Shown here: piece by piece, positions 3,001-59,548 of the stretch
Layout of the letters: the number at the start of each line of letters is the position of its first letter
How positions within the stretch are numbered: position 1 is the first letter of the stretch
Assembly (NCBI GenBank): GCA_024704765.1
Contig: JAKMXF010000298.1
Location: 248,001-312,000 of the forward strand
Source: Oopsacas minuta
Lineage: Eukaryota; Animalia; Porifera
DNA: 64,000 nucleotides
Direction: 5' to 3'
Notes under the pieces: generated by a model
Seen by the model: the letters and a program-made list of their open reading frames with translations, nothing else
Told to the model about the DNA's origin: nothing
Database searches by the model: none
Made by a program: the position numbers and the translations under genes

Positions 3001-3221
3001 ATACCCTACTAGCTCTCAAGAATAGTATCAGCCCTGAGAAACTCGAACAAATCGTGAAAGCGATTGATACAGATTCAGATGGGTTCATACGTCAAGAGAA
3101 TTTGCATAAAATCATTAACATGATAGCTTCTGAAGACACAGAGATAAGTACAGCTCATGTTAAGCAAATTACAGAGCTCATAGATCGGGAGCTTCTTACT
3201 GTCAAGCTTAAACAGCAATAA
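1..3221 (+). CDS. LETM1: LETM1 mitochondrial inner-membrane Ca2+/H+ (K+/H+) exchanger, 5' end outside window. Exons <1-523, 587-759, 1314-1559, 1899-2160, 2507-2736, 2907-3221
   Basis: HYYHGFKLF..LTRREKRQLERTVADIFRLVPFSIFIILPFMEFLLPVAIKIFPGLLPSTF, LRLQL..LKADD.LI.KEG, ACQARGMR and an EF-hand-like DTDSDGFI; GT-AG junctions keep the frame; stop TAA 3219-3221. Confidence 0.95.
1120..1201 (-). tRNA. tRNA-Leu(AAG), 82 nt, in LETM1 intron 2
   Basis: Reverse complement GGTAGCGTGGCCGAGCGGTCTAAGGCG-ATAGT-TTAAGGC-ACTAT-TCTCTTCGGAGGCGTGGGTTCGAATCCCACCGCTGCCA: A and B boxes, long variable arm, paired anticodon stem, T-run terminator at 1111-1115. Confidence 0.96.
2313..2495. mobile_element. MITE family C (TIR CAG(T/C)G(A/G)AAC(C/T)TCGTTAATAC), Tc1/mariner-pogo type. 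Related copies ~23190-23347 and 39020-39197
   Basis: tacagcgaaacttcgttaatac ... gtattaacgaggtttcactg inverted ends; the 39020-39197 copy has TA on both sides. Confidence 0.75.
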
Positions 3222-3989
3222 ATACTTGACTACCTGCGACTTTATCTAACATGTTGAATTAGTTAGTTCTAATTCTGATCAATCAATCCCATGTCTTATT
3301 TAATAAGTTTTGTGATATGTAATAATTTTATTATATTAATATTAAATTAATAAATCAAATAACTTATATATAGCTCAGTTTTTGTGTATTAGATTTTCTA
3401 TCTTAGAGGAAAGGTCATTTTTTCGGATTAATGAAAGTCTCCTTTTCGATTGAGTGTATGGAGTTTTTGTATTGCAAAAAAACTGTATTATACTCTACTA
3501 TAGCTCAGCTATATATAAGGAATCTCATATTAATGTAAGATTGTTTTGGATTAATATTCCTCCATCCTTGCTAATGTTTCGATACAATAATGTTTTCGTT
3601 CACACCTTTAGAGATAATGACACCAAATTTGGCATGTGTACCCATAGTGATGTCTAGATGTACACCTGACATTTGAAAAATTTCCTGTGTGTATTTTCAC
3701 ACCTTTTGACACCTCTGTATTTTTCTTTGCTAAAATAGATATTTAGTAGAATAATATACTTTAATTAATCCACTAAAAATTAATTTGGTAAAATCTAAGT
3801 CAGCGCGAGCAAGCGAATCGGCTCATTAATTATAATATTAATTTTGCAGAACTTGTTAATAGCGTAATACATTTATTGGATAATATGAATGAAAATGGAT
3901 GTATGCTCGCTATTGGGGTATCATATGGGACAGAGCTTTACATAAACTCATAAAACATGCATATAGAAAGGTATATTCACACTGGTTAA

Positions 3990-5041: not shown

Positions 5042-8000
5042 ATGAAGGCCATTTTATTGATAATATTCTTTGCAACAATATTCAATGGAACAGTTTCAAT
5101 TCGATTTATTCTAAAACCGAAAGATGTCTATGTCTACAATAGTAACGATACGAAATTCACTTGTTTGGCTGAGGGTGAATTAAATATTACTTATGTTTGG
5201 CTGAAGGATGGGAAATCAGGTGGAAACAATAGATGGCAAGCATATGGTAGGTTCATTAATCATTTTATTATACAAATTCCATAATTGAAATAAAACGTGG
5301 TGGAAATTCGTTAAGTATTGCAAAATATAATACTAACTCCACTGTATTTACGAATTTGATTTTCTAGGAGCAACTCTGTATTATAATTCAGTTAAAGCAA
5401 AAGATAATGGTGTATTGGTGACTTGTCAAGCTACAGATTCTACAGGTACTGCAATACAAGCAAGTGCTACTATACACGTATATAACAGATCTACTGCAAC
5501 TTTTCCATTGATTACTACTGGGCCTAGTGACGTAGAAGCTGAATCTGGTGCCAATGTGAATTTCACATGCACTGCTTATGGTAAGTTTATCAAGCAAATT
5601 TCAACCCAAATTTAATAGTTTTTAACAGGTGTAATGGGGGACATTCGCTGGATTCATAGGGACCTAGAGCTTAATACATTCCCAGATCTTCGTGACGTCA
5701 CAACATACAATGATGGTTTGAACATTACCTCTACTTTGAGTTTGATCGAAGTTTACGCTGAGAACAATGGTGTATACGTTTGTGAAGCATTTGGTACTCC
5801 TTTTTATGTTGAAGGATTTGATAGCAAAAATGCGACACTGATCGTACGACAATCCCCTGTCATTATAAGTATTTCTCATAATGTATTCGCTACTGAAGGT
5901 CAGGAGATGAATGCTACCTGTGTTTTCTCAGGATATCCTGAACCTATAATTACATGGGTTGATGTAAATGATACAATTGTGAATAGAGGCTCAAGTTGGA
6001 TTGTGAGTAATGTTGCCATAGATATAGAGGGAGAGTATAGATGTATTGGTAAGAATATACAAGGTACAACTTATTCATTTGTTTCTATAACAGTCTACTC
6101 TATACCACGGATAATTAGTGTATTTGATGAGCTGTTGGATATATCTTTTGGTGATGAGCTTCAACTTGAATGTACTGCTATAGGTAAGATATGTAAATTC
6201 TTATTTCTTTAAATGTTCCTTTTATAGTAGAGTTCGCCTATTAGCAAGTCATATTTTGCACGAATTTCCTTGCCATCTTGCTATTAGAGAAATTATCTCA
6301 TACAAAATGGACTGAAGTCACTAAAAAACACGCTAATATGAAAACACAACTGTATATTGTTTATTAAGAATTCAGTTGATGAATACTCCTGGTATATTCG
6401 TACAAATACAATAGTTATCGCTTATAAGAACACCCTTGGGAGTAGCAAAATACTATTTTCTTATAACCGGTATGAAATCTACAAGATTATGTATATAAGA
6501 ACCATTTTCCATAGGATGGTTCTTATAAGTTGTTTCTTATAGCCGGTGGTTCTTATGCGGTTATCAATTCCTAATTTCTAGGTAGGCCATCACCTGATAT
6601 ATTTTGGTATAAAGATGATAATCAGCTGACAGCTAACAATAGATTATCTATAGAAGCGAATTATCTGTTAATAGGAGAGGTAAACAGAGAAGATCAAGGT
6701 TCATATTATTGTATAGCAGGTAATACAGTAGGAAATATATCATCTGATCAAACATTTGTAAAAGTACACACCATTCCTATTCCACCTTCTGGTCTCGAAA
6801 TAGTTGAAATAACTCATGAATCCGCGAAATTACACTGGATTCCCATAGTATCAACTGATCCTGTATTCCAATTTGAAGTTATCGTAATGGATAAAAGTTA
6901 TTCATTTCCTCTTCAAAATATTTCTATTCCTACTGATTCTCTAACTACAGTAAATGGATTCAGTGAATATACTATACAGGGATTATCTGCTTATACATAT
7001 TACCATATATGGATACAAGCAATAAACGATATTGGTGCGAGCGAATTTTCGCAGTTTGAGTTGTTTCAGACGAAAACATGGTTTCCATCACCCCCGATTG
7101 TACGCACGCGAAATATAACACCTTTCAGTGTAGATATACAAATTATATCCGATGAAAGTGCGCTTAATGGCCCATACGAGGGCGTAAACCTCACAATTAC
7201 GTCACAGCAAGAAGGCCTCTTAACGGATACAAGAATATTCAACTCTTCTTCACAATTAACAATTTATAGCTCCCTATATGACCTAATACCCTATCATAAG
7301 TACACGTTAACAGCTTATACGTTCAACGGAGATTACTATAGTGAAACTTCTACAGTAACATTTCTAACTTTAGAATCACAACCCGGGACACCACCCAGCA
7401 AATTACAGGTCAACTGTACGTCTTCTAGTGTCTGTGTATTGAATTGGGAGCAACCGAAAGAACCGAATGGTTTGATAACTTCTTATACGCTTACTATTGA
7501 GAATTTAGGTTTAACTGAATCACACATTACTTCGTTCACAGTTAGAAACGATTCCAATTTTTATATCGCGGAAGATCTCACACCATATTCGTCATATTCT
7601 TGGAGAATATTAGCCTCCACTCGGGCTGGAGCTGGGCCTCAGGGAACACGTAGATTCAGGACACCTCAAGGAGTTCCGAGCGATAGTCCTATCCTAACGG
7701 TAGAAACTGTCAACTCAACTGCAATCAGATTAACATGGCTAAAATTAGATATAAATAATCTAAACGGTGAATTCCATCACTACCAAATCCTATACACTTA
7801 TACAGGTATAAACGGGAAGAATATAAACAAGACTTTAATAATTCCGTCAAATCGTGGAGTGACAATCTCTAATCTCAATCCTTATACAAACTATGGCTTT
7901 AGCATTAGAGTTAATGCAGGTATAGGGTATGGCCCTTACAGTATAAATCCTATTCATAAAATCACATTTTCAGAGATACCAGATTCGGTTGTTGACAACT

Positions 8001-11000
8001 TCACAGCTATTTCTTTCACACCTAATTCCGTGTTTCTTAAGTGGAAACAAATACCTAAAAACTTGATTTATGCATCAACAGCTAACTATCGCATAGAAAT
8101 AAAATCACATGATAATTGGCTTGAACTAGATGAAGTTACTTACACTAAAAATCTTTATAACGTTAATTACCTACAACCAAATACGCTGTATTTCTTCCGA
8201 ATACAACTCTTCAACTATTTAGGCTCCGCTCCTTATTCAAAAGAAATAAATATTACAACTCAACAAACTATCCCACTTGTCCCTATCGTAACAGGATCAT
8301 TAGGGGCTAATAGCTTAGAAATAATCTTAGAAATTACCCCACAGAATTCTACTACAGGAGATATAATCGAATACGAAGTGAAGGTTAATGAAATTGGTGA
8401 AAGAGTAATTGATATTAGAACTATAATTCCTTTGGACATACACGACACGACTCATATCATTTACAATGCTACTAATTACTTCACATTCTACAAATTTACT
8501 ATCTCAGCTAAAACTACCGTAGGATTTGGTGAACCTGCTATCTACCTAATAGAATCTGGTCAAGCTGCTCCAAGTGTACCCCCACAGCGCTTGATAGCTC
8601 TCCCCCAGACCTCAACAAGTGTACACTTATCTTGGGAACCTATTCCCGATAGTTATCTCAACGGTGAATTAACTGGCTATTTAATACGCTATAATACAGT
8701 ACTACATCAAAATTGGGTGTACTTAAATCATACACAATCTACATTCAAACTAGTAACAGATCTTGACAAGTATACTGTATACACTTTCCAAGTTGCAGGC
8801 GATACAATAGCTATTGGGGAGTATTCAAACCTAGCTTCTAATCGAACACTCCCTGACACCCCTGGGGAAATACAGTCAGTTTCTCTTATTAAGGCTAAAT
8901 CGAATATTCTACGAATTAGATGGGAACCGCCTTCAGAACCTAACGGAATTATTTCGCAATACAGAATAAAAGTTGTACAAGATAGGATTAATGATTTAGC
9001 CATACATGCTTCAACGCTAAACTCAATAATACTCCGTGATTTATCTCCGTACACACAATATACCCTACAAGTAGCTGCTACAAACCAAATAGATACTGGA
9101 CCATACAGTAACGAGTTCATCTTCACAACTAAAGAAGATACTCCATCAAAACCAATTATTTCACAGGTGTACAGGCAAGGCTACCAATTGACAGTCAGCT
9201 GGCATACACCATATGATCCTAATGGGTTAATAATTGACTACAATTTAACGTGCTTTCTCTTATCAGCTAGCGATACGCCTTCATCTACCCGTAAGATTAC
9301 AATACTACACAAATCTGGAATTTATTCGTATTCAGCTTCGTGTACGCAACTTACACCAAACAGTGTATATTTAATAGAATTGTCAGTAAGAAATTCATTC
9401 AATACGAGTTGGACAAGTGCAATAAAAAATACGGATTATCTGCCTCCCAAAATTGTTGATAGTACTTCCACGAAGCCTGAAATAATTAATGAGCGAATTT
9501 TCACACTTCCGAAATTCTCTAAAACAGTTGGAAAAATCTCATTCTACCTCATAGTTGTCCTTGTTTACGACCCTTTAACAACCACAATAGACATACTTAC
9601 TACCAATCAATCAATATACAGCCTCCTAGCGTATGCTCTAACAAGTGATTCATCAAAACCGGAAAACTACATCGCGGCAAATTTCACACCCACAGATTAT
9701 GGATTATTTAATCTAGGGGATAATGAGTTATACGGTGATTACCGTAATATTCCGTTGGAAAAAGGTTATGGCTATACTTTCTACGTCAAAGCATGTGTAA
9801 ATTCAATCAATCAAAATAGATTTCTCGCGACTAGTAGCAGTTTATCTGAACCAATAATAATCCCGAAAGAAATCCCCGCGAATGATCAAATTTCTGCTAT
9901 TTCAGCAGTAGTAGCTGTTTCAACTATTCTCCTTTGTCTTCTCATCTGTATATTCGTAATTTTAATCAGTGTATTCTGTGCGAGAATTCGTTCAAAACGG
10001 AAATGTATAAATAGCTCCAATAATTTGATATCAAAACAGCATTTCCCATACCAGCCTTGTGATACAGAATACAACTCAGTGCCGTGGTCAGCTAATGTTA
10101 ATTTCAAGAAATCATTCAAAGGAATAGATCCAATATCAACCTACCGTAGTACCGCTAATGACCCACAATTAGACGCTAGGGCCCCTGTCCCAGCATTTAT
10201 GTTACCGAAGATTCTGGAAGATTTAACAGCTGATGATGAGCTGCGGTTAAGCGAGGAATATAGCTATCTTATTCCAATAGATACGTCGACTACTATTTTA
10301 GCAAATGCTGAGATTAACGTGAAGAAAAACAGATATTTGAATATACTACCTTACGATCATAATAGAGTTTGTCTACAGGTAAATTCTAAGACAGATTCGG
10401 ATTATATAAACGCTAGTTTCATTGACGGTGCTGACAAAAAGAACGCGTATATTGCGACACAAGGGCCTACTGAATCAACACTTGAAGATTTCTGGCAAAT
10501 GGTGTATGAACAACATGTACAGAGTTTGGTGATGGTCACTAAATTGAAAGAGAAGGGAGTTGATAAATGTATTCAATACTGGCCAACAAAAAACACTAAT
10601 ATATTTGGAAAATATAAAATCACTCTCCTCTCAACGTCTGTATACTGTGACTATATTGTGAGGAAACTTTTGCTTGGAAAAATCGCTACAAACAAAGAAT
10701 CAAGAGTTATTTATCATTTCCAGTTTATTTCCTGGCCAGACCACGGAGTACCACTTCATCCCTTACCCATGCTTAACTTCTTAAAACGTGTCCATCAAAC
10801 AATGAATAGAAAATTGATTGTCACACAAAATCCTATTCTAGTGCATTGCAGTGCTGGCGTAGGCCGAACAGGCACTTTTATAGTTTTGGATTCTATGTTG
10901 AAACGTATGATAAGTGATAAAGATGTTGATATATTTGGTCATGTAGCTTATCTACGTACACAGCGTATGTTCATGGTACAAGGAGAGGATCAGTATTTGT

Positions 11001-12118
11001 TCATTTATAAGGTCCTAGCGGAATGTTACACTTCTCATAAGACTGAAATTCCTTTGAAAATTATTGATAGTGTATACTCAAATCTAACTGTTGTGGATCC
11101 AAACACACAAAAATCTGGTTTCGAGTTTGAATTTAATCTTCTCGAAAGGAAATATGAAAAATGTGACTTTTCATCTGCAGATGATGAATTAAATAAACAG
11201 AAAAACAGATACACACAAATTATACCGTATGAAAACTCACGAGTTAAGTTACCAATTCTAAATGAACAACGAGATACAGATTATGTTAACGCTAGTTTCA
11301 TTGACGGGTATATTTGCAAACAACAGTTCATTGCTACACAAACACCGCTTGCTAATACGATACCAGATTTCTGGAGAATGATCTGGCAAGAAAAATCACC
11401 AATTATCGTAATGATAACTACGCAATCTTCTGATTTTGATGAGTGTTATTTCCCTGAAAAGTTACAGATTTATGACAAATTTCAGGTTGAAAAGACATCT
11501 GATCGCTCCAACAAGGATAATTATATTTACCAACAATTTTCTGTGATGAATATCAGTACAGGAGAAGCACGGACTATAAGTCATTTTCAATATTCTCCTT
11601 TCACACAATTGAATAAGTCATTTTCTGCTAGAGCACTGCTATTGCTGTGCCAAGAGATCGCTAACATGTATCAGTCAGTAAGCTCAGGTCCTATCACAGT
11701 ACATTGTAATAATGGTAGTGGGAATACAGGCATGTTGATAGCAGTAATGAATCTATTGGAAGAATTGAAAGAAGCTAGAAATATCAACATTTCTCAAACA
11801 GTACATTATTTGCGTTCACAGCGTCCATTCATGCTACAAACCGTAGAACAGTATCATATTATATACGAAGCTATGCTACAACAAGTAAAATCTTCTATAG
11901 AAAATATCAGTCGCCGTGCTTCTGGCATCGAAGAGTATACCCCTCCAACTAGCCCAGTAAAAATGTCTACTTTCTCTAAAACACGTGACTCAATCAATTC
12001 ATTCAATAGTTTACCAAATCGTTTGAGTTATACTAATAATTATAATTATCGTAATAGTCTTGCTTCAAATTCTTCCGCCTACTCAAACTATGATGAAGTA
12101 TTGGAGACATCTTCATAG
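5042..12118 (+). CDS. Receptor-type tyrosine phosphatase, LAR/type II-like: signal peptide, 4 Ig, ~9-10 FN3, TM, PTP D1 and D2. Exons 5042-5246, 5368-5580, 5629-6183, 6582-12118
   Basis: Signal MKAILLIIFF; Ig C..W..D.G.Y.C motifs; FN3 repeats (L.PYT.Y); TM ISAVVAVSTILLCLLICIFVILISVFC; D1 KNRY, WPDHGVP, HCSAGVGRTG; D2 KNRY, HCNNGSGNTG. Confidence 0.93.
6225..6340. repeat. Dispersed repeat family D (AGTTCGCCTATTAGCAAGTCATATTTTGCACGAATTTCC). Other copies ~2808-2860, 26040-26170, 32685-32780, 45294-45430, 59105-59220
   Basis: Near-identical non-coding segments recur in both orientations in introns and intergenic DNA. Confidence 0.65.
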
Positions 12119-27986: not shown

Positions 27987-29620
27987 ATGGCTATTCTCTT
28001 CTACATATTCAAGTTCTTTGGGTGGTTAATCAACTTGCTGGTTGTAATTTTGGGAGGCATTATATTAAGTGCTGGCATATATGCTACCATCGAGACAAGT
28101 AAGTTTATATTTATTCAACTCCTGTTGTATCGTTTCGAAATACCCGCTTGTATCAAAGTCTGAAATTGTACAAATATGATCCCAAACCGTCAAAGTAAAA
28201 TATATTTCATCTTTGGTTATTTGTAATTCCGCATTTATCAAAGTAATTATCGCTGTCCCTTGAGCTTCGATATAACTGGAGTTAATTGTAATTTATAATA
28301 ATTAAGCTTGTAAAAATATGTATTATATATTTATACAGGTGCATTCAGCAGCCAGATATCTCTCTCTAGCATTATTACACAGCCTGCAATAATGTTCATA
28401 GTACTAGGCTCCTTACTAGTGATTATTGGTATTATGGGAGTAGTAGGTACGCTAAGAGAAGTCAGATTTATACTATGGATATATGCAGCTATCGTTGGTA
28501 TTATCCTAACATTAGAGATTGCATTGGTTGCATATTTAGTGTATAGTTTTACTCAGAACAAAGAACAGTTACAGGCTCAAGCGGAAACTGCATTTACTCC
28601 TCTTATAGAGAATTATAGAGATGATAATGATCTGAGAGCTCTTATTGATTTGTTACAGAATGGATTATCTTGCTGTGGAATTAATTCGTTTCATGATTGG
28701 GAAAATAATAGGTTCTTTTTCTATTTATTTAGAAATATTGATGGAATTAGTAAATCGCTGATTTCTCCGCGTTAGTATGGACAATAGAAATTATTATCCG
28801 TTTGAATAACGAATTGAAATAACCAAATGGATTATTTCAATAAATTTCCAAAAAAATTTTTCAGCAGGAATATTCAGAATTTGGAATTCTGTATTAATTA
28901 TTAGTCTGCTAAATATACAGCGGATGCCAATTATAAGAACACCCTTGGGAGTAGCAATACATGTTCTTATGTTCTTCTGACGTTTCTGACAAATATGCAT
29001 TCACTATCTCATCATATAGGTACTTCAACTGCAGTGCTCCAGGCGTAGAGAAATGTGGAGTACCTAATTCTTGTTGTAAGGATGAATTACAACTGAATAG
29101 TCAATGTGGTTACGATGTCAGGAGTCTTTCTAGCAATAGATTAGATAATATTAAGCTCATTAGTTGTTTGCAAGCTTTTGATTTATTTCTCACTTCAAAT
29201 CAGATAACATTAGGAGTGATTGGAGCTGTGTTACTATTGATACAAGTATCTGCCATTGTATTATCTCTAATGTTGAGTTTTGAGATCCCAAACAAACGAG
29301 AGGTAATATAGATATTTATGTGTACAGTCAATTCCTCTTATATCGAACACGGACTTATTGAAATACCCGCTTATATCAAAGCCTGAAAATTGTACAAATA
29401 TGGTCCCAAACCGTCAAAGTAACTTCAATTGGTTATATCATACTTCGTTTATATCAAATTTATTTTTGCAGTCCCTTGAGCTTCGATGGGTAAAGGTAGT
29501 ACTCTATTTTTTGTTCTTTTAATATCTTATAATTTATTATATTTTTAGGATGATGTAATCAAGAAATTGCGAGCCAATCGACCTAAACATCGCAAATCTC
29601 ATCCTCACGTCAGACGTTGA
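27987..29620 (+). CDS. Tetraspanin, TspanC8 subfamily, paralog 2. Exons 27987-28098, 28339-28711, 29000-29302, 29549-29620
   Basis: Exon 1 reads MAILFYIFKFFGWLINLLVVILGGIILSAGIYA (a different frame from the ORF track); large loop CCGINSFHDWENNRYFNC..CGVPNSCC..NSQCGY..SC with 8 Cys. Confidence 0.88.
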
Positions 29621-29800: not shown

Positions 29801-30648
29801 ATGTTTAGATTAACTGTGAGAACAATTTATGATCGTTTTTGTGTTCGAAAGTTTGCAACTTATAAACAAGGACACTCTCCATTTCCAGATACACGAGAAT
29901 ATTTTTATTTTGTGAATCATCAAGGTCAGGTTCGTAGTACTAATTTCTCTCATTATTTTGCATAAAATTCTCTTTTCTTTGCAATTCATATACACGCACC
30001 TGCAATTTTTATTTTTACGAATATATTGCACTGTGTGTAGCTGTTTCTAGATGATACACGAGTTAAAAATTTTATTACTTCCTTCAAAGGTAATTACGCG
30101 ATACAAAATACAATACTTGGAAATATTAAAAACTATTCTATTTAGATGAGAAATTCCTATCTCTCCTCTTCTCAAGAATGAAAATGAACAACACAGAACG
30201 TTGGAAACAAGATTTTCCATTCCTATATATTTGTGCTGGAGAAAATAATTATATTCGATGTGATGACCTACCAATTGTATTCACACAAATATACACGAAA
30301 ACTGGCAATGAACTGTCCCTCGTTGATTTACAATCTCTTGTCCAATTCGATAGTAATACAGACTATTTCCTGTCATATGGTAGTTATAAGGGTCGACTAA
30401 GAGTTAAATTTAATCCAAGTTCTCTCTGCATGCATCCTGATAATGGAAGACTTTATCATTCAGGTCCAGAGAGGGTAGGGGGAGTTGGATTAATCAAATC
30501 TGCGTTAGCTGATGAATTGAGTAGTTTCTTTGTGTATAAAGCTGATAATAAATCTCCCACACATTTCAAGAATAATTCTACAGGCGAATTAATTCCTCTC
30601 ACTAACGAAATTCTACCATTAATTTCTCAACTGAGTAATTGCGTTTGA
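29801..30648 (+). CDS. C8orf82: C8orf82/UPF0598 (DUF4505) homolog. Exons 29801-29929, 30041-30089, 30146-30648
   Basis: REYFYFVNHQGQLFLDDTRVKNFITSFKD, RCDDLPIVFT, GRLYHSGPERVGGVGLIKS.LA. Confidence 0.88.
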
Positions 30649-36800: not shown

Positions 36801-39800
36801 AGTGTTGCCGGATGATGTGTTCATCTCGTGCACTTGAAAGTTCATGGTTCATGCTAAAGCAAAAACCTATGAACTTTGTTAATGATCTGGCAACATTAAC
36901 TGATTCAAATTTCTCCAGGTTAATACGAAATATGTAAATATTCTTTTATACGTTATCTACATATTTGAATACTCATATATTTATTTGTTAGATGAGTCAG
37001 AGTTACTGAGCATCGGGCCTCTAGCTATCTACACAGAGAACTTAAAGACTGCCTTACAAGCCGAAGCTAAATCTTGGATATTATTATTTGCAAGACATAT
37101 GAATGATAAATATGAGAAGATGATGTCTAACTTGTTAAAATCGATGGAAGATTGGGCATCACAACTATCTAGACCTATCAAGGATCTAGATGATATACGA
37201 GCTACTATGTCATGTCTGAAGAATATTCGAGAGAATGAAATAAATGTTGATATGGAGATCAGTCCGATTGAGGTGTGTGATTAATCATATGATCAGTGAC
37301 GTCATGTGTATAAGGCAAATGTAGCTTGGACCCTTGTCTATATAATAAAAAAAATAATATTATTAATAATCCACAGGATCTCAAAATTAGTATTACAGTC
37401 TATGGAAGGGGTCAAGGGGTTCCACAGACTGTATGATAAATTCCATAATTCTATGTCATATAACGACACGAGAAAAAACTATTCTTATACTACTAATATT
37501 TAAGTATGCTCTCTATTGTATTCAGGAATGCTATGGAATGCTACAAGCCTACAATCTTCCTGTGGATAGAGAGGAAGTTGACAAGGTAGATATACTCAGA
37601 TATACATGGAATAAGCTACAAAATCAAGTAAAGGAGACTGTAACTAATCTCATCAAAATACAGCCAAAATACAAAGACTCACTTCAAGAAAATATATTCT
37701 CATTTTCAAGAGATACAGATAAATTTGTGGATAGGTACAAGCTAGAGGGACCAATGGCTGAGGGGGTTAGCCCAAGAGATGCATCTGCTAGACTTGTTGT
37801 ATTCCAGTCAGAATTTGATTCACTTTGGAGAAGGTAATTCAATTTCGAATATATAGATATCCAAAATGCAGTCAACTCCTGTTATATCGAAGCTCAAGGG
37901 ATCGCGATGATTACTTCGATATTACCAATGAAAGATATCTTACTTCGACGGTTAGGATCATACTTGAACATTTTCAGATTTCTATATAAACGGGTATTTC
38001 TATATATTCGTGTTCGATATAACAGGAGAGTTGACTGTACCTACATTCTATCAACCACGTAAATGCTAAGAATTCCTCTGCTAAATGTATTAACGATAGT
38101 CTACTTTATATTCTTATAGATATCAGACATACTCTGATGGTGAAGATCTATTCGGTCTAAACACTACACAATATCCTGGTATACAGCAGATACGCAAAGA
38201 ACTGAATCTGTTACAGAAACTGTACGGTCTGTACAATGCTGTTATGGATAGTATTGATGGTTTCTATGAGGTGCACTGGGGTGATGTGGATATTGAAAAG
38301 ATAAACAATGAGATAATGGATTTCCAAAATAGGTAATATTATTGATTAATTCCAGAAATGCGTTTTATGGTGATCGGATTGAGAAATTTCGCGGGATCTT
38401 TATTTTGTCATTCGTAATATGGAAGGAAATATGATAATTTATATTAATTTATTCGCAGATGTCGGAAACTTCCAAAGGATTTGAAAGATTGGCGCGCTTT
38501 TGGAGAACTTAAAAGAAAACTAGAAGAATTCCACGAAATTTGTCCATTACTTGAAATGATGTCAAATGATGCAATGAAAGACCGTCACTGGCAGAGACTT
38601 GAGGAGTTGACCTCACATAAATTCGATGTAGAGACTGAAGGTTTCCAGTTGAAGAACATTCTAGAAGCTCCACTTCTCCAACACAAGGAGGATATTGAGG
38701 TAAGAAGTTTCCAGGAATTGGTCAATTTGGCGTGAGAATTGTTCCAACTTATTTTCTATTATAGGATATTTGTATAAGTGCAGTGAAGGAGAAAGATATT
38801 GAAGCCAAACTGGGAGCTGTCATGGCTGAATGGAAAACACGTACGCTAAATTTCGGTAACTTTAAATCACGAGGAGAACTGCTTTTAAAAGGAGAAGATA
38901 CTTCTGAAATTATAACTTTCATGGAAGATTCACTAATGGTTCTGGGTTCTCTCATGAGTAACAGGTAACTATTTGCCGATTGTTTCGTTTTTGGGAGATG
39001 ACGAAATTTGCTTGCACTACAGTGGAACATTGTCCATACGAACACTGTTGATGCAAATTTCGGGAAGGCGAACTAATATTTACACAAAATAAGATCCCTA
39101 CATTGTTTTTCAATTGGCATTACTCCGGTTAATACGATCTCCAGATAAAGCGAACTAATTTTGACTGTCCATTTGGTGTTCGTGCGAGATTCCACTGTAA
39201 ATACTACATTCCTGTGTAGTCAAGGAGGGATTTTCTTGTTAGGGAGGGGCTTTCATTGTGTTGTCTTTGGACGAAATTCCTGGTGTCGATAATTGCATTG
39301 TCCATTATATTAAATTGGTAGATACTTTTCATTATACTTCTTAACTTCTCTAGGTACAACGCTCCTTTCAAGACTCAAATACAAGAATGGCTACATAAAC
39401 TGACGAATTCTACAGAAATAATAGAGAAATGGCTTGTAGTACAGAATCTATGGGTATATTTAGAAGCAGTATTTGTTGGTGGAGATATCGCTAAACAGTT
39501 GCCGAAAGAAGCGAAGCGGTTTCAGGGTATAGACAAGTCATGGGTGAAGATAATGACCAGAGCTCATGAGACAAACGTAGTAGTGCCCTGTTGTGTAGGG
39601 GATGAAACGATGGGACAACTGTTACCACACTTGTTGGAGCAATTGGAGACTTGTCAAAAGTCACTCACAGGGTTAGTAAGATACTGTATGTTGTTTATTT
39701 TTTTAATGTGAAAAATGGCAATATAGTCAACTCCCGTTATCAAACACGGATATATCAAAGTTTGTAACAAATTTGGTCCGAAACCGTCGAACATAAATTT

Positions 39801-42800
39801 TCATCGGTTATATCGAACTCCGCTTACATCGAAAGAATTATCACGGTCCCTTGAACTTCGATATAACGGGAATTAACTGTACGTAACTATTTTAGAAAAT
39901 TTTCTTGTATTTTTATTTGGAATTTTCACAGTTATCTCGAGAAGAAACGATTGATATTTCCTCGTTTTTTCTTCGTATCTGACCCAGTACTTCTTGAGAT
40001 CCTCGGACAAGCAAGTGATTCTCATACAATACAAGCTCACCTCTTAAATATATTTGACAATATAAAAACCGTTACATTTCATCCAAAAGAGTACGATACT
40101 ATTTTAGAAATCAACTCAAAAGAGCCAGAAACAATTCAATTAGATCAAAAAGTAATAGCACAAGGGCACGTGGAGTTATGGCTAGGAAAGCTACTTTTTA
40201 TGGCTAGAAAATCAGTAGCTAGTGTTGTTAGAAATGCTCACATTACAATTTCAAATCCAAACTGCGTACTATTAGAATTCTTAGAATCCTTTCCAGCCCA
40301 GGTTAGTTATTACCTTTCATAGAATTATTCTAATAGTGTAAATCAATATATAGTATACGAGGTTATGGGCGTGTTTTGCAGTACTATTAAAAATGATATC
40401 TGCAATGCAACCTGTGGAGAAAACTCTATATTTGTCTATATCTGAAAGGTCATTTGAATAGTAAGGTCATTCTAATTGCATTCCTCTACGCATGCTATTC
40501 ATTTCTGGGTAGTATATCTACTACCTAGAAGCATGACTCGCCAGGGCTAAGTTCAATATCATGATTATTGCGTGATATTTTACAGTTGGCTTCTCAACAA
40601 GTAGTTATATAAGGTTGATAAAACTAATGTAAACACATTTCTGCTTCACTCAATGGATGCATATTTACACTCTCCAACCTCTGGTCTTCTCTACCAAGCT
40701 ATTGATGATGTAACAAAGCGGTCATGTGTATCTTCCTACCAATTTGGCCCGATGGAGCCTAGCTTTTCACCGCCCCCTCCGGCAACTCCTCAGGTATTTA
40801 GCCCTCCTCCAATCCGTGAATTCAATGTCAGTTTCACTCAACCATTATCTCCTGCTACCACACAACAATCTCCTGTATCACCATGTGAAGCACCGTATAC
40901 TCCTGTTGCATCTCCCAACATTTTTTCCACAATAGACTTCAATTTGTCTATACAGCGACAAAGAGCTGCATTAAATCGAGATCGTTACAAGAAAGTACGT
41001 TTCTGCGTCTTTTGCCAAAGCTCTAAACAACCTGAGCAAGTTTACCGTTCTCACATTTTGAAAGATCAACAGGGTCGCGTGGTTTGCCCTTTCCTACGAA
41101 GTTATACATGTCCTCTGTGTTGTGCCAATGGAGATGATGCACACACCATAAAGTATTGTCCCCTTAGACAACCAACCATTGTATTCACATAGTCATTAGT
41201 GTTCTAATTAGAACTTCTCTATTTGATATGAGAAGATAGTTGAAATTATGCTTAGCTTCTTTCTCAAAATTTTGTGACCAATTAGGATTTTCTACGACAA
41301 TAGTTTTTGAATTATCATCATCAATTGTATTTTGCCTATTAATATTTTCATGATTTGTATTCTGGAATTTGTATTCTGTTGGTTGTTTATATATTATATT
41401 TATATTCCTTTGAGATTGGTGGGTGAAATTGGTGCTTTTTGCCAATACACTAAACTCTTTTCTTATCATAAGTGAATTTATTGAGATACTCTATTGCGGC
41501 AGTACCCAACCTTTTCGCCAGTGGACCCTCTATACCAATTTTAACACATTTTGTGGACCCCCCATAGGCCTCAATACAAATTTTGAGATCCTGTGGGTCC
41601 CTTGCTGCTTTCAGGAGACCACCAGGAGGTCCATGTTTGTGAAAATACAATGTGCGAGCGTCCATCTACATGATCTTACGAGATCTTGTGACCCAATTTG
41701 GAACGTAGAATTGCTAGAACTTATGTTTATGCTCCAATATCCTTCTCTGAGTAATTGGATGAAACCAAACTGTATATATTTCTTTGAATTATTGGTTGAT
41801 ATAATCAGGCGTAAAGTTTGAAAACCAAAGACCCTAAATGTACAATTTACTTGCTTTTATCGATCGTTTCATTTTTCCAGCAATATCTTATTCAATAATG
41901 CCATCATATATTTTCATTGTATTTATCATGTATTTTCCTATAGGTCGGTATTATAGGGATTCAAATGTTGTGGACACGAGATGCTGAAATTGCACTAACG
42001 AACTGTCGCACTAATAAGACAATTATGGCTGATACAAATCAGGCATTTTTGGAAATTCTAAATATGCTGATCGATCAAACCACAAGGAATCTAACCAAGT
42101 TAGAACGAATACGATTTGAAACACTCATAACAATCCACGTGCATCAAAGAGATATTTTCAATGATTTAGTAAAATTACATATTCGTACTCCAAAGGATTT
42201 TGAATGGTTAAAACAGACTAGATTCTATTATATAGATGAGCTAGACAAATGTGGTATTTCTATTACGGATGTAAACTTTACTTATCAGAATGAATTTCTC
42301 GGATGTACAGATAGATTGGTGATTACCCCACTTACAGATAGGTGTTATATTTCGCTAGCTCAGGCACTTGGTATGTCTATGGGTGGATCTCCAGCTGGAC
42401 CTGCTGGAACAGGTATGTTAAAATGGGGAATTAGAAAATTTAACGTATGACAGCTTAATGAAACCCAGGCATATTATGATTATTAGAAATTTACCATGGA
42501 TAGTAGATTTAGTGTTATATACAAATTTCCCTGTCCAAACGAGCGAGGAGTGCTTCAAAATGACCTCGAACAACATCTAAGCAGATTAACTAAATCCACA
42601 ATCCATGGTTGAATAAACATATTAAAGAGGCCACTTTCGTCATAACAGTATTACCAATACGAACTTACGTTAGGTAAGACTGAGACTGTGAAAGATATGG
42701 GTCGTTGTCTGGGGAAATACGTAGTAGTATTCAACTGTTCAGATCAGATGGATTTCAGAGGTCTAGGCCGTATCTACAAGGGACTAGCTCAGTCAGGATC

Positions 42801-48800: not shown

Positions 48801-51800
48801 TGGGGTCCCTGGCACCCCGTTTGTGGAGGCTACACTGTACTGCTATTATCTTATCTTTGAATTTTCATGTATCATAAAAGTTTATTAAAACACGTTCCTT
48901 CTAGCTCGGAGAAATGGCTAGTAGAATGGAGAGAGGACTTAACAAGTTGTTAGAAGCTCAGAAGTCAGTAGAAGAGCTACAAGTAGAATTGAATCAGAAA
49001 GAAAAGGATTTAGCTGTTGCTAACGTAGAGGCAGAGAAAGTATTAGCAGATGTTACTGTATCAGCTCAAGCAGCTGAGAAGGTCAAAGCTGAAGTACAGC
49101 TTGTGAGTTTTGTATAAGTACAAATACAGTATATGTAATTACTCTCGTTATGTGAATCTGCTGCTGGTTATTACTGTTATCATTCACCATAGGTTAAAGA
49201 TAAAGCACAAGAAATCTATGATGACATCTCAGCGAATAAAGCTATCGCTGAAGAAAAGCTATTAGAAGCTAAACCCGCATTAGAGGAAGCAGAGAGAGCC
49301 CTCAAAACTATTCAGCCATCTCATATAGCTACAGTTCGTAGACTTGCTAATCCCCCTCATCTTATCATGCGTATCATGGATGCTGTGTCTCTCCTATTCA
49401 AGAGGAAGATGGATCCTGTAACCATGGATCCTGAAAAGCCAACGATAAAGCCATCTTGGTCTGAGTCGCTTAAATTAATGGGAGGAATTACTTTCTTGAA
49501 TGATCTGTTAAACTTCCAAAAGGTACTTTTCAGTTGGTGGTCAGATAAAACACACGAAAATATAAATATGGGTTCGTATAAATCAGCGGTTTTCCCCTAT
49601 ACCTTTTTAACACATTCTATGGACCACTCTCATAGACAGCAATACAATTTTTTAGATCCTCTGTACCCCCTGCTGTCTTTCGTGGACCACCAAGGGTCCA
49701 TGGGTCCAGGTTGAGAAACGCTGGTATAAATAACGAACTTGTTATAGGATAAGATAACTGAAGAAACAGTCGAATTAATGTCTCCCTACTTACAAGCCCC
49801 TGATTTCAATTTGGAGAGTGCTAAGAGAGTATGTGGTGACGTAGCTGGTCTCTGTTCATGGTCTAAAGCTATGTCTATATACTTTACAATTAATAAAGAG
49901 GTTATACCACTTAAACGAGAGTTAGCTATACAAGAGGTTAAGCTAGAAAAAGCGCAGACTAAGCTTGATGCTGCACAAGCACAGTTAGATGAGAAAGAGA
50001 AAGAATTGGCTGTAGTACGAGCGCTATATGATAACGCTATGCGAAAGAAACAGGTTTTTGATAATAAAAATAGTGTTTGAATTGGATAATACAGTGTAAT
50101 GCTACCCAGTTTCTCGTTTGTGGAAGTTTCACTGTACAATTGCTTCCGACAAGTTTTGCTATGAATTTTGAAAATTAGTATGCCTTCGCCTTTTAGCAAT
50201 TTTCATGGATTTAATTTTCATTTTGTATTAGAAATAATAGGCAAACTCCACTACTTATATTCGATTTCAAACTAATTATTATCGCTTTTTAGACATTGAT
50301 GGATGACGCTGAAACTTGTAAGAGAAAGATGAAGGCCGCGACTGCACTCATACAAGGTTTATCATCTGAGAAAGAACGATGGACACGACAAAGCAAAGAA
50401 TTCCAGCAACAAATTGTCAGGTAAGGTATACACAGTTAAATGTATTATAATTAAAGAACAATAGTATTCATTGAACCATCAGGTTGGTAGGAGACGTACT
50501 TCTTGCTACAGGATTCCTGTCATACACAGGACCATTCAATCAAGAGTTTAGATTGTTACTAATGGATACATGGAAGAAGGAATTGAAGGAGAGAGGAATA
50601 CCTTATACGGAGAGTATTAACTTAATTGAAATGTTAACTGATCCTGCGCAGGTAAATATTGAGTCCAGTCAACTCCCGTTACATAGACATACCCCCTTAT
50701 ATAGAGACCGGAAATTGTACAAATATGGTCCCAAACCATAAATGTAACATATATTCAATCGGTAATATCAAGCAATTATCGCGGTCCCTTGAGCTTCGAT
50801 TTAACGGGAGTTGACTGTAATTTTAAAGAAATAATTTAGAAAATATTTGAATTATTCTGAATAGATTGGTGAATGGAATCTACAAGGACTTCCTAACGAT
50901 GAACTTTCAATTCAGAATGCAATCATTGTGACGTCAGCATCTAGATATCCTCTACTAATCGATCCTCAAGGCCAAGGTAAAATCTGGATAAAGAACAGGG
51001 AAGGTTCAGACTTACGACTAACCAGTCTAACGAATAAATATTTCAGGCAAGTTCTAGAGGACTGTCTGTCACAAGGTCTACCTCTAATGATAGAAGATGT
51101 AGGGGAGACTCTAGACCCAGCACTTGATAACGTGCTCGAGAAGAATTTTATAAAACAGGGTACTGTACTGAAAGTTAAAGTTGGTGATAAGGAAGTTGAT
51201 GTGATGAAAGGATTCATGTTATACGTCACTACCAAGCTAGCGAATCCTTCTTATACACCTGAGGTATGATCTTATTGCCAAAATAGTACTCTCTATATGT
51301 TTATTAGTTATATAACCATGGATAGCGGATTAGTTTATCTGCTTGGATATTGTTCTAGGTCATTTTGAGGTAGTCCTCGCTTGATTGGACTGGTAAATTT
51401 GCATATAACGTAAGTAAACTATATCCCCCATCCATGATTAAATACCTAATAATCTAATAGGAGACCATTTTTGTCAAAAATGTGAGCCAACGAATATCGA
51501 AAATAATTCCTTCACAAGTTTGACTGTTATTAAATCTATCTAGATATTCGCCCGCACGAGTATAATTGATTTCACTGTGACAATGCAAGGGCTAGAAGAT
51601 CAGCTGTTAGGTCGTGTGATATTAACAGAAAAACAGGAGTTAGAATCAGAACGAGTTAAACTCCTGGAAGATGTAACAGCTAACAAACGTAAGATGAAAG
51701 AACTAGAAGATAATCTGTTGTTCAGACTGACAAATACTAAGGGTAGCCTTGTGGATGATGAATCACTGATTGAGGTATTGAGAGTTACTAAAGCAACTGC

Positions 51801-52512: not shown

Positions 52513-55500
52513 ATTATAGTTGCTACAAGAGGAAGTATACTATATTTCTTGATTGTTGAGATGTCTATGGTGAATTGTATGTACCAAACATCACTGAATC
52601 AATTTCTTGATTTGTTTGACTTGTCAATGGCCAAGTAAGTACAAATTCGAATATTCAAATATTTATTTACCAATTATCCGGTGTACATAGGTCAGACCGT
52701 TCTCCGATAACAAGCAAACGTATACAAGCTATAATAGACAAGTTAACCATGGTTACATTTGTGTACGCTACACGGGGATTTTATGAAGAACACAAGTTTC
52801 TATTCACACTACTGATGACCCTCAAGATTGACATGAATCAGAAACTTATTCGACATAATGAGTTTCTAACTTTTATCAAAGGTTTGTAATGGCAAACCTA
52901 TTTGGTAGATGCCTCCACTAACAAATTACGTATTATGAATTCTACAGGTGGTGCAGCACTGGACTTAAAGACTGTAGCTCCTAAGTCAGCTAATTGGATT
53001 CTAGACATGACCTGGCTTAACTTAGTAGAACTCAGCTCTCTGCCTAGTTTCACTGAGATTCTGAATCAGGTGACTAAAGGTGATAAAATATGGAAGCAAT
53101 GGTTTGATTCAGAAGCTCCAGAAGAAGCTGTAATTCCTGATGGATATAATAACTCATTAGACACATTCAAAAAGCTCTTGCTTATAAGGTATAACAATTG
53201 ATAGTATAGCCATAGGCCAGCGGTTCCAAATCTGGGCTCTATGGACCCCTTAGTGATCCACGGGAGTCCACAGGATCTCAAAATTGGTCTCTTCTAGATC
53301 ATGGTGTCCAGATAGAGTATTGTTTCAAGCTAGAAACTTCGTAGCAGAGAGAATGGGAAAGGTGTATGCAGAAGGAGTTATTCTAGACATTGAGAAGATG
53401 TTCTACGAATCTAAGACTAGAACACCTCTGATCTGTTTCTTATCTCTTGGATCTGATCCTAGCGATTCTATTAGAGATCTTGGAAAGAAATTAAATTTTG
53501 GTAAATAATAATTAAATTCAAAACTAGCTTTATGTATTTTATTGTGTTTTAGAGTTCCGAGCTGTTAGTATGGGACAAGGTCAAGAAGTACACGCAAGAC
53601 GAGGCTTACAACAATTGATACAAGGAGTAAGTTCCTTACAATTCATTGCAATAAATATCATTCAAGGAACATGTTAACGCTTTTGATGTAATTTTTCAAT
53701 TATATATTATTGGTAATTTCTGATAAGATTACAAATTGGACCTAGCACTTCGCTGGTACCATTAGGCTATCGATTCCCAAACTGGGATCTTGGACCCCTT
53801 TGAGTTCCTGTGGGAGGCCACAGGATCTCAAAATTTGTATTGTAGTCTATAGGAGGGTGTCCACGGGGCGAAAAGGTTGGAAACCACACATTGGTCATTG
53901 ATTAAATCGAAACAATATACTTTCCTTAAAACACAATGAAATTATAGGGTGGATGGATGTTATTACAGAACTGTCATCTGTGTATTGACTTCCTTGAAGA
54001 GGTCCTGGAAATTGTTCTAGAAACCCAAACAGTACATGATGATTTCCGTCTCTGGATAACTTCAGAAGTAAATCCAGAATTCTCAATCAATCTATTACAG
54101 ATTTGTATAAAATTCACTTTTGATCCACCTCGTGGGATACGAGCTGGTCTCAAACGAACATACACAAACATCTCACAAGATCAATTGGAAGTATCAAACT
54201 TATCGCAATGGAAACCTATGTTGTACGCTCTCTCATTCATGCATTCAACCGTACAAGAACGTAGAAAATTTGGTGCTATTGGCTGGAATATTCCTTATGA
54301 ATATAATCAATCAGATTTCAATGCTACAATGCAGTTTATTCAAAATCATTTAGATGATATGGACCTCAAAAAGGTAAGGAAAACTTCAGCGATAATTTTG
54401 GAATTCTTAACGTGAAGAAAGTGGAAATTTCGAATTTTTCGGGAATTGAGTAAAACGTAGTTTGGTGTTCTCGTAACGCATATGACGTAATTGGTTATTA
54501 TAAAATGACCGATTCTTTATTAAAAAAGTTTAAATTTAATCCTCAATACTTATTATAGGGACCCTCGTGGGGAACAGTTCGCTACATGATTGGAGAAATC
54601 CAATATGGAGGAAGAGTAACTGACGATTTTGATAAATTTCTACTTAATGTATTTGCCAAGGTAATTTTGTATATTTTGTATTCAAACTTTGGAAATGTTC
54701 TTTACGATAATTTCTATTTTTAGCATTGGTTTTGTGAAGAAATGTTCAGACCTAATTTTGAATTCTACAAAAAATACGGTATTCACGTTTGTAAGACAAT
54801 CAAAGAGTATTTGGAAACAATAGAGAAGTTATCTCCTGTTGATTCTCCAGAAGTATTTGGTCTTCACAAGAATGCAGATATCACGTAAGGGCGAATTTGT
54901 ATTATTTGATTAATCATAAGGAATGTAGATAGTATAAATCTTGATCATATGATGATTCATGTTTTGGTCCTTTTTACTCCAATTTCAAATAACTTGAGAT
55001 ATTCTAATACAGCGGATGCGAAATACCAACCTGCCTTTGGTGTTGCACGGACAACTATTGGGAAAAGTGGATCCACAGACTGTGTTAAGATTAGTATAGG
55101 GGGTCAAAAGTGAAAAGGTTGAGAAATTATTTTCTAACGGCTAGTCAGCTGTAACCGCGAGTGACAAATAACTTCCAAGCGCACTACTTATCAGCTGACA
55201 GAATATTTGTATACATTTACGAATACATTCTCCTCTCCTTATTTAGATACCAGACGTCCACAGCAAAACTAATGCTGGATACTATCTTAAATGTCCAGCC
55301 TAAAGATAGTAGCAGTGGAGGAGGAGAGACAAGAGAATCTATTGTGTACAGACTAGCTGAAGACATGCTTAAGAAACTACCTCCGAATTTCCTAGCTCAC
55401 GAGGTAATCATAATTTGTATGAAAAGAATATTAATACGAAAATATATTTAATTCTATAAAATAGGTAAAAGAACAAATGCAAAAGATGGGTAGATTACAG

Positions 55501-57606: not shown

Positions 57607-59548
57607 TTACAAATCCTCCTTCTCAAATACAGGATCATCCCAACTGAAATCAGATAAATCTATATCATCCTCAATAAACGGCTCTCCATCTTTCCCATCC
57701 CACGGTTGAATCTCTGATACCGTCGGTAAACCCGCGGATTGTAGGGCACTAGTACTACCCCTCCCAACTGCTATACCCCTCAACAATTCATCAATCCCAT
57801 TTTCACTGAATGCCCCCCTCAATAGCGAGTATCTAGCCTTGCGGCTATTTACAACTACAAGAGCAGGGTAGCCGAATCCACCAACTTCTAGAGCCGTCTC
57901 CAGATCTGATATCATACCCCCTTCTGACCATAACCACTCCCATCTACGCATTTTGAATTTGTCTCCCAATTCTGTAAGCATCTGTTTGGTGAGAGGAAAT
58001 CATTAAATACTTATAGTATTAAATTTGGAAATACGGTAGAGACAGGATATTTTAACAATTTTCGTGCAAATAATGTGTTTAAAATATCCATTTTCTACTG
58101 TATCAACTCACCTCTAGGTATTTATTCCTTCCCTCAGCTCCCGTATCCAGGATATGAGGCAGGAATGTAATCACACACAGTGGAGCAGCTAGACACGTAT
58201 CCAATTCATCCTGTCCAACTAGCTGTCTAACCTCTGGAGTAGACACAGAATCAGTCCATCTAGACAGACCCCATTGTACAATATCATCAGCTGTTCTTCC
58301 CCCTGAATAATCCTCTACACTGGAGGTTGTCTTAGGCCCAGCTGGAAAGAACTTAATAGTCGGATATCCTTGTACCGAGTATCGACCTGCTGTATTCTTG
58401 TGTGTAGTAGCGTCTAATGCTCCAAGATTAATTTTACCTTTTAATTCTGTAGCTGCTTTAGCCCAGTGTGGAGCTAAGTTCTTACAATGTCCGCACCATG
58501 GAGCGTAGAATTCTACTAGCCATGGTTCAACTGAAGAGAGGACCATCTTGTCGAATGTTTCATCTGATAATTCGATTACATCACTCTTTCCTTGTCCACC
58601 TTGATTTTGTTGTTGTTGTTGTTGTTGTTGACCACCTCCGCCTCCTCCCATGCGTTCCTGGACGAGATCAGCTGAAACAAATATAATGACGCCATAAAAA
58701 ATTTAGATGAAACAATATGTTTCATCAGTTGTATAGAACTCCGCTTATATTGAAATAATTATCACGTTCCCTTGAGATTCGATATAATGGGATTGACTGT
58801 ATATATTTAGGCTATACGTATACGTACTTCACTTCACTACTAACACAACTCATTACCTATTAATAACAATAGCAATTCTACTTACCAGCTTCTTTCATAG
58901 CTGCTTGCACTATAGCTTGAGCAGAACGAGCACCCTGATAGTCTTTCGGTTTATTTTTATTAGAGCCGAATATCTTAATAGTAGGAAATCCTGATATACC
59001 ATAAGGACTCCCTAGTGAAGAGTATTGATCCATATCGACAGCACCTATGATAAGCTAGATAACTATTAAGTCTAGAGTTTCACCGGTATATTCTTATAAA
59101 TTATAGAGTAGTTTTGCACGAATTTCCCTTGCTAATAGAGGAATTATTCCAATACAAAATGAACTCTAAGTCCCTGAAAAACTTTCAATGAAGCGATTGC
59201 CGAGCATTGCTAATTTGTGAACACCACTATATGATGAACTTTCGAGAAATAGAACTGAAAGGGCTAGTAAAACAAAATACAATAAAACCGCAGTTTGGTT
59301 ACATATTACATACCTACGCCTACTACTCCCTTGAGAGCAGCAGCTGCCTTCTTCCACTCAGGAGCTAGGTTCTTACAGTGTCCACACCATGGAGCGTAGA
59401 ATTCAACAAACCACATCCCTTCTCCTCCCAACACCAGCTGATTGAAATTAGTTGGCGTTAACTCTATGACATCATCAGATTTAGTGTACAGGGCTGATGT
59501 AAAACTCAGACATGAGTAGAGTATTGTAAAGTAATATAGACTATGCAT
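57607..59548 (-). CDS. PDIA6: Protein disulfide isomerase A6 (P5). Exons 59548-59314, 59044-58886, 58671-58112, 57981-57607
   Basis: Signal peptide, two [14 protein letters not shown] thioredoxin domains, b domain GIGGFGYPA-like [12 protein letters not shown], acidic tail ending KEDL. Confidence 0.95.

Follow-up and report, generated by a model that had tools for sequence, protein, structure and literature searches.

A nanos gene nested in an outer-arm dynein intron of the glass sponge Oopsacas minuta: anatomy, conservation and dispersal

A complete nanos gene lies inside an intron of a gene for an axonemal dynein heavy chain, on the same strand, in a 64,000-nucleotide stretch of the Oopsacas minuta genome (assembly GCA_024704765.1, contig JAKMXF010000298.1, positions 248,001 to 312,000 of the forward strand; "the window", numbered here from its first letter). 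Why does a gene of this family sit there, and does either gene depend on the other? A first reading of the same DNA (the original prediction) proposed that transcription of the two genes might be coupled or mutually exclusive, and that the pair could act as a switch between germline and flagellum. We put at about 75% the probability of a different reading, namely that this is an autonomous nested nanos paralogue, which would be transcribed from its own TATA promoter and kept in place by the constraints on its host gene. We found no paper on a nanos gene nested in a dynein gene. The locus presents a clean, well-conserved host and nested pair in an early-branching animal, composed of two biologically evocative genes. 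Related species supply natural experiments of a kind seldom available for nested genes: in one the orientation is flipped, and in another excised copies carry dead host stubs.

The host intron and the gene within it

The host gene was recognized from colinear Pfam matches in the order N1, N2, AAA1, lid, AAA4, D6 and C, including DHC_N1 at 32254, AAA_lid at 44436, AAA_8 at 47875, Dynein_heavy/AAA_lid_11 at 53957 and Dynein_C at 55161. The span given in Table 1 is the minimum that these domains support, and the true ends lie slightly outside it. The type of dynein was identified from three host exons queried one by one against solved structures, and not from a joined, spliced protein model. The best PDB matches of the three exons were human DNAH5 (8j07_n0) and a 4730-residue sperm outer-arm chain (9fqr_I3). 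Their DNAH5 bit scores were 312.9, 140.7 and 247.1, against best DNAH9/DNAH17 scores of 182.8, 35.9 and 98.3; the AAA1 exon, for example, scored 312.9 bits with DNAH5 versus 182.8 with DNAH9. Because DNAH5 and the sperm outer-arm chain far outscore the other matches, we assign the host to the gamma-type outer-arm heavy chains (DNAH5/DNAH8; gamma as in Chlamydomonas).

The last exon of the DHC_N2 linker, which ends in LESFPAQ, aligns with residues 1713-1828 of human DNAH5, and the following exon, which opens with VGIIGIQ and reaches the AAA1 P-loop, aligns with residues 1829-1984. Since the two alignments meet at 1828/1829 without gap or overlap, the exons are contiguous and the intron between them is in phase 0. 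The intron starts with GTTAGT directly after LESFPAQ (40301) and ends with ..TTTTCCTATAG directly before VGIIGIQ (41944). The anatomy read from the letters of the window is confirmed: a complete intronless nanos gene with its own TATA element, on the same strand as the host and between in-phase exons of DNAH5/8 type.

The nested open reading frame (ORF) matches the Pfam zf-nanos family with an E-value of 1.2e-23 and a score of 83.5 bits (cutoff 27), and it carries both of the CCHC knuckles that mark members of the family. The eight zinc ligands, C118, C121, H134, C145, C153, C156, H164 and C169, are invariant among 17 aligned nanos proteins, and the product would be a working Nanos zinc-finger RNA-binding repressor. 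The first 33 residues (MD.YL...GLLY.AIDDV..) are kept in all orthologues. For this reason we place the start codon at 40653 and not at Met34, where the 146-residue database model of the gene (P0001) begins; that model seems to lack part of the N-terminus, and the corrected gene starts 33 codons earlier. No Pfam match was found for the other ORFs of this intron and of the neighbouring introns, and an Rfam scan of the intron returned no match. The TATA box, the ORF and the conserved 3' untranslated region (3'UTR) all lie inside the host intron, and with its transcript ends as predicted the gene is a nested intronic gene.

Beyond the ORF, little of the intron can be aligned across species, save for a block upstream of the ATG and a block after the stop codon. 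The upstream block has the layout of a core promoter. In the window the TATA element TATATAAG (40606-40613) lies 47 bases 5' of the ATG, and in all nested loci the distance is 47-54 bases. The flanks of the TATA box are conserved across these loci as TTTGGCTTCT..CTAGTATAAAAGGTTGCTAA, or in the fuller pattern TTTGGCTTCT..CTAG-TATAAAAGGTTGCTAA, and a CGTGA motif lies about 35 bases further upstream. The predicted transcription unit would consist of this promoter, a short leader, the intronless ORF and a 3'UTR of about 250 bases, and nanos would presumably be transcribed from its own promoter.

These features bear on the possibility that nanos lacks an effective promoter of its own and simply follows its host, dynein transcription either producing it or opening it in cells that build flagella, such as spermatids or collar-bearing cells. 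We consider this highly improbable. A TATA box at a near-fixed distance from the ATG and with conserved flanks speaks against it, even though the same-strand position would suit such a dependence and contigs of one relative (described below) connect nanos without a break to the host exon on one side and to the next exon on the other. The host frame closes 6 codons into the intron, and in-frame stops occur 21-102 bases 5' of the nanos ATG in every species; stop codons therefore part the two frames, and no dynein-nanos fusion is encoded. Cap-dependent scanning disfavours an internal ORF far downstream of the cap, and nanos carried on unspliced dynein pre-mRNA would be expected to be translated poorly. 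An antisense relative and dispersed copies under selection, both treated below, also argue against dependence on the host.

The blocks that follow the stop codon are nearly invariant among the nested loci, the first of them (41214-41239) with the consensus CTTCTCTATTTGATATGAGAAG.TAG. It contains the inverted repeat CTTCTC/GAGAAG, for which a 6-bp hairpin is predicted. No covariation or compensatory changes were seen in this hairpin, and it matches no Rfam family, the Drosophila nanos control element included, so for the 3'UTR block we claim sequence conservation only. The first AATAAA or ATTAAA after the stop codon occurs at 208 bases in L001, 245 in L003, 376 in L002 and 704 in L008 (loci of related species, introduced below); in the window, two non-canonical hexamers are candidate poly(A) signals (Table 1). 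A short, GC-richer interspersed repeat has been inserted downstream of nanos in the window and is absent from the orthologous introns. Relatives of this repeat occur elsewhere within the dynein span, at 49594-49702, 53818-53856 (minus strand) and 37371-37413 (minus strand).

Table 1. Features of the dynein gene, its intron and the nested nanos gene (window coordinates)
Feature	Position	Strand	Basis or content
DNAH5/DNAH8-type (Chlamydomonas gamma type) outer-arm axonemal dynein heavy chain gene, domain-supported span	32254-55448	+	Pfam domain matches
Last DHC_N2 (linker) exon, ending ..LESFPAQ	39951-40301 (5' boundary approximate)	+	Pfam DHC_N2, profile 311-403 of 403, E 1.3e-27
Host intron, phase 0, 1,642 bases, GTTAGT...CCTATAG	40302-41943	+	Contains the entire nanos gene
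Putative core-promoter block	40570-40622	+	CGTGA 40571-40575; GTTGGCTTCTCAAC 40585-40598; TATA box TATATAAGGTTG 40606-40617
nanos coding sequence, 179 codons and stop, intron-free ORF	40653-41192	+	ORF call, Pfam
nanos zinc-finger domain, two CCHC knuckles, residues 118-170	41004-41162	+	Pfam PF05741, profile 1-53 of 54
Conserved 3'UTR blocks	41214-41258	+	CTTCTCTATTTGATATGAGAAGATAG 41214-41239; GCTTAGCTT 41250-41258
Candidate non-canonical poly(A) signals AATACA, ACTAAA	41444-41454	+	+252 and +257 from stop; sequence only
Short interspersed repeat	41527-41636		Inserted downstream of nanos
Next host exon, VGIIGIQ.. to AAA1 P-loop GPAGTG	41944 to at least 42411	+	Pfam AAA_6 profile start, E 6.5e-16

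Conservation of the nesting and selection on nanos

Loci from five other independent long-read sponge assemblies (L001, L002, L003, L008 and L016) have the same arrangement. In each, the last DHC_N2 exon precedes nanos and the first AAA_6 exon follows it, all on one strand, and the exon boundaries share the form LESFPAQ followed by (V/I)GI(I/L)GIQ. Misassembly, which the original prediction had named as a possible refutation, is therefore excluded, and the nesting, whose conservation in other sponges it had proposed to check, is not unique to this genome. The orthologous introns are 1247, 2467, 1341 and 1830 bases long, and about 1489 bases in L016; the gaps between adjacent exon-bearing ORFs of the host are of a few hundred bases only.

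The nanos proteins of the closest relatives are 61-71% identical to the window protein over their full length. Between the window gene and its orthologues synonymous divergence (dS) is saturated, at 1.5 to more than 4, while the ratio of nonsynonymous to synonymous substitution rates (dN/dS) is 0.06-0.17; over all orthologue pairs with measurable dS it is 0.06-0.19. The combination of saturated dS and low dN/dS indicates that the nesting is old and that the gene is under purifying selection. The nested arrangement would have arisen in a common ancestor of these sponges.

The selection data already contradict the idea, which we regard as scarcely credible, that the ORF lacks function and is either a retrocopy, dead or decaying, or a product of chance. 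Its intronless state and the multi-copy nanos family of glass sponges (PMC5381599) might invite such a view. A dN/dS of 0.06-0.19 maintained in six species across saturated dS does not fit it, nor do eight intact zinc ligands and a conserved promoter and 3'UTR. Nanos genes are commonly intronless, so the missing introns are nothing out of the ordinary. No stretch of 8 A occurs in the intron and nanos is not bracketed by direct repeats, although ancient hallmarks of retroposition could have decayed; the nested gene does not show the marks of a processed retrogene (a poly(A) remnant, target-site duplications and an intron-bearing parent).

A more distant relative shows that the orientation of the pair can change. 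L009, a Logan contig of 3,972 bases, has AAA1 exons that share 81% and 92.5% identity with the window exons. Its splice acceptor (..cttatag, followed directly by IAILGLQ) matches that of the nested loci. Nanos lies 907 bases upstream of this exon on the opposite strand, with no DHC_N2 exon between the two. The features, at 2925-3590 and 1551-2018 of the contig, place nanos antisense in the same dynein intron. The pair has thus outlived an inversion and its orientation is not fixed; likewise, same-strand read-through is not needed for nanos to be retained. At the start of the 3'UTR of this antisense copy, the block that the other species conserve is replaced by an inverted repeat of 13 bp without mismatches, CACTCTAGATTAT..ATAATCTAGAGTG.

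Nanos genes in general are not nested in this way. Dynein exons were sought beside the nanos genes of other animals and were found on none of 80 metagenome contigs, 32 of which extend at least 1 kb on both sides of the gene, a test that is weakened by the shortness of the contigs; the nanos 5 loci of glass sponges, discussed in the last section, also lie elsewhere.

In the species of L003, an observation on sequencing data concerns RNA. Two Logan contigs, L004 and L005, run along the genome (L003:7646-9044) with 100% colinearity. L005 begins exactly 30 bases inside the upstream host exon, and L004 stops 28 bases inside the downstream exon, a distance that becomes 30 when the AG common to the exon end and the intron end is counted. 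Logan assemblies are built from 31-letter words (k-1 = 30), and contigs built in this way should break at the points where spliced and unspliced paths converge. Because the contig ends fall k-1 bases past both junctions, we take the underlying runs to be RNA in which the host intron is spliced and nanos is also covered. We infer that samples of this species contain both spliced host RNA and RNA covering the whole of nanos, the latter being either nanos mRNA or unspliced host RNA. As the samples are bulk tissue, the observation is neutral on whether the two genes exclude each other at the level of the cell.

Dispersed nanos units and the question of coupling

The most informative by-product of the comparison is the dispersal of the nanos unit, together with dead dynein stubs, in the species of L016. 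In addition to the nanos gene nested in an intact dynein gene, this assembly holds copies elsewhere (L010-L015), on at least five contigs; one contig of 2.24 Mb bears two of the copies at a distance of 168 kb. All of the dispersed copies trace to one founder copy of L016:7068-9358, a 2.3-kb segment that runs from about 170 bases 5' of the last DHC_N2 exon, through the nanos intron, and into the AAA1 exon for 94 codons. Since the copies carry the intron and the exon stubs, duplication in this species took place at the DNA level. The dynein stubs share identical frameshifts in all dispersed copies and, being frameshifted, are dead.

The dispersed unit then spread within segments longer than 8 kb, in two contexts: in one it is adjoined by Tim17 and CH-domain ORFs, and in the other by hAT- and MULE-type transposase ORFs. 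One unit, L010:7242-9289, consists of exon stub, nanos and exon stub. Directly 3' of the truncated AAA1 stub, staggered self-matches reveal a long minisatellite with a 25-base period (L010:9400-11850; L011:9332-10225).

The nanos ORF is open in nine of the ten dispersed protein variants, the other being shortened to 144 residues. The nanos coding sequence has changed least, with an identity to L016 of 96.4-97.3%, compared with 92% in the N2 exon stub and 89-92% in the 5' flank. The dN/dS between nested and dispersed copies is 0.15-0.33, and between two dispersed subfamilies it is 0.21-0.26; the latter comparison involves small counts, with 8 nonsynonymous and 9 synonymous changes where 77% would be expected to be nonsynonymous (binomial P 0.008). 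Because the dispersed copies keep intact ORFs under purifying selection, nanos appears to be independent of a working host, which suggests that it stays useful without one and that the 2.3-kb segment may hold all that it needs.

These results can be set against the proposal that the two genes regulate each other, in that the promoter or poly(A) signal of nanos truncates dynein before AAA1 while dynein read-through silences nanos. The same-strand geometry is real, it is found in six species despite saturated synonymous divergence, the mechanism has been proven at an endogenous mammalian locus (PMC13309782), and the missing canonical poly(A) hexamer could mean that selection has acted against truncation of the host. 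We nonetheless think it unlikely: the pair persists in L009 with its orientation flipped, dispersed copies without a functional host are under purifying selection, and nesting in glass sponges is common and often conserved without such an explanation (PMC10282587). A more specific version, in which nanos acts as a conditional terminator that ends dynein before AAA1 when it fires in stem or germ-line cells, and is itself suppressed by dynein read-through, seems to us decidedly unlikely. If true, it would mean a hard-wired choice between stem or germline and flagellated states, with a weak or non-canonical poly(A) signal tuned to permit both outcomes.

The switch between germline and flagellum put forward in the original prediction is a hypothesis weakened by the flipped copy, by the dispersed copies under selection and by the high number of conserved nested genes in these genomes. 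Its premise that most nested genes are antisense to their hosts was overstated: in mouse and human there is only a slight excess of opposite orientation (PMC11694760), so a same-strand pair is not unusual. Its sponge choanocyte example needs adapting, since the source is a glass sponge; the homoscleromorph Oscarella expresses nanos in its choanocytes and pinacocytes as well as in gametes and embryos (PMC5381599).

Several observations also weigh against an autonomous gene held in place by its host. An exact look-up of the 179-residue ORF in public assemblies gave no record, and neither AATAAA nor ATTAAA occurs in the 751 bases 3' of the nanos stop in the window. In the dispersed units the AAA1 exon stub, too, is close to L016 (95-97% identical), which is compatible with gene conversion; conversion with the nested copy could supply part of the signal of purifying selection in the dispersed copies. 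Among the near-identical dispersed contigs, some may represent haplotigs and not distinct loci. Finally, the same-strand orientation in six of the seven species sampled could reflect either constraint or mere shared ancestry.

We nevertheless favour the autonomous nested paralogue. The most likely reason for its persistence is that a gene inside an essential host would be hard to move without breaking the host. Compact glass sponge genomes with a stable local gene order would favour persistence as well, and co-regulation would not be needed.

Nanos relatives, neighbouring genes and known nested pairs

The closest named protein is nanos 5 of O. minuta itself (UniProt A0A1W5RSD3; P0010), with 50% identity. 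A 21-residue segment and the C-terminus QPT..FT are common to nanos 5 and the nested nanos, and in a tree the nested clade joins the nanos 5 clade with 93/97 support, to the exclusion of the other nanos sampled from sponges and vertebrates, a grouping that fits a duplication within glass sponges. Unlike its nested relative, nanos 5 sits outside any host, between the amidohydrolase and TMEM234 genes (GCA_024704765.1), in the gene order GFM1, amidohydrolase, nanos, TMEM234, RPS28, SCAI; its orthologue in the species of L001 is likewise outside dynein. Dynein remnants were sought beside the nanos 5 loci (L006 and L007) as a sign of descent from a nested unit, and none was found. Glass sponges have 5-6 nanos copies, versus mostly one in other animals (PMC5381599), an increase that has been unexplained; the dispersed units of the L016 species demonstrate one DNA-level route by which nanos copies can multiply.

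The nested protein resembles Drosophila nanos and vertebrate NANOS1-3 (PF05741) in its C-terminal double CCHC finger with intact ligands, and it shares with the family the short protein, the intronless ORF and a conserved 3'UTR segment. Its N-terminus differs. Where the NOT1-interacting-type motif, which in vertebrate Nanos recruits CCR4-NOT, has the form F..W.DYLGL, the nested nanos has GLLY.AIDDV and the nanos 5 clade a still recognizable F.NYFGL. In an alignment of this region (window 40653-40720, residues 1-23) the nanos 5 clade reads FNNYFGLADV and Latimeria FWNDYLGLSTL, whereas the nested clade is without the aromatic residues. The two paralogues may therefore recruit partners differently.

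Around the dynein gene, the window contains tetraspanin and DUF4505 exons upstream (28392-28775 and 30178-30648, plus strand) and a thioredoxin/PDIA6-like gene downstream on the opposite strand (57607-58651, minus strand). Further upstream, an uninterrupted ORF of 1,743 codons (6887-12118, plus strand) encodes a receptor-type protein tyrosine phosphatase with five fibronectin III and two phosphatase domains.

The pair has close counterparts among the nested genes described from glass sponges. In Aphrocallistes vastus, 12.4% of genes (2432) are nested and many of these are conserved, and glass sponges share extensive microsynteny (PMC10282587). As in the present case, the nested genes reported from A. 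vastus and O. minuta are single-exon genes that lie wholly within an intron of a larger gene and are conserved; the glassin gene is reported to be nested in this way in both species (PMC10282587). To these the nanos/dynein pair adds an orientation flip and the dispersal of the nested unit. A second comparison is with mouse H13/Mcts2, in which a small intronless gene with its own promoter also lies inside a host intron and transcriptional interference with intronic polyadenylation of the host has been demonstrated (PMC13309782). The mouse effect, however, operates under imprinted DNA methylation, whereas the sponge pair is known from sequence, and there the comparative evidence points to independence of the two genes.

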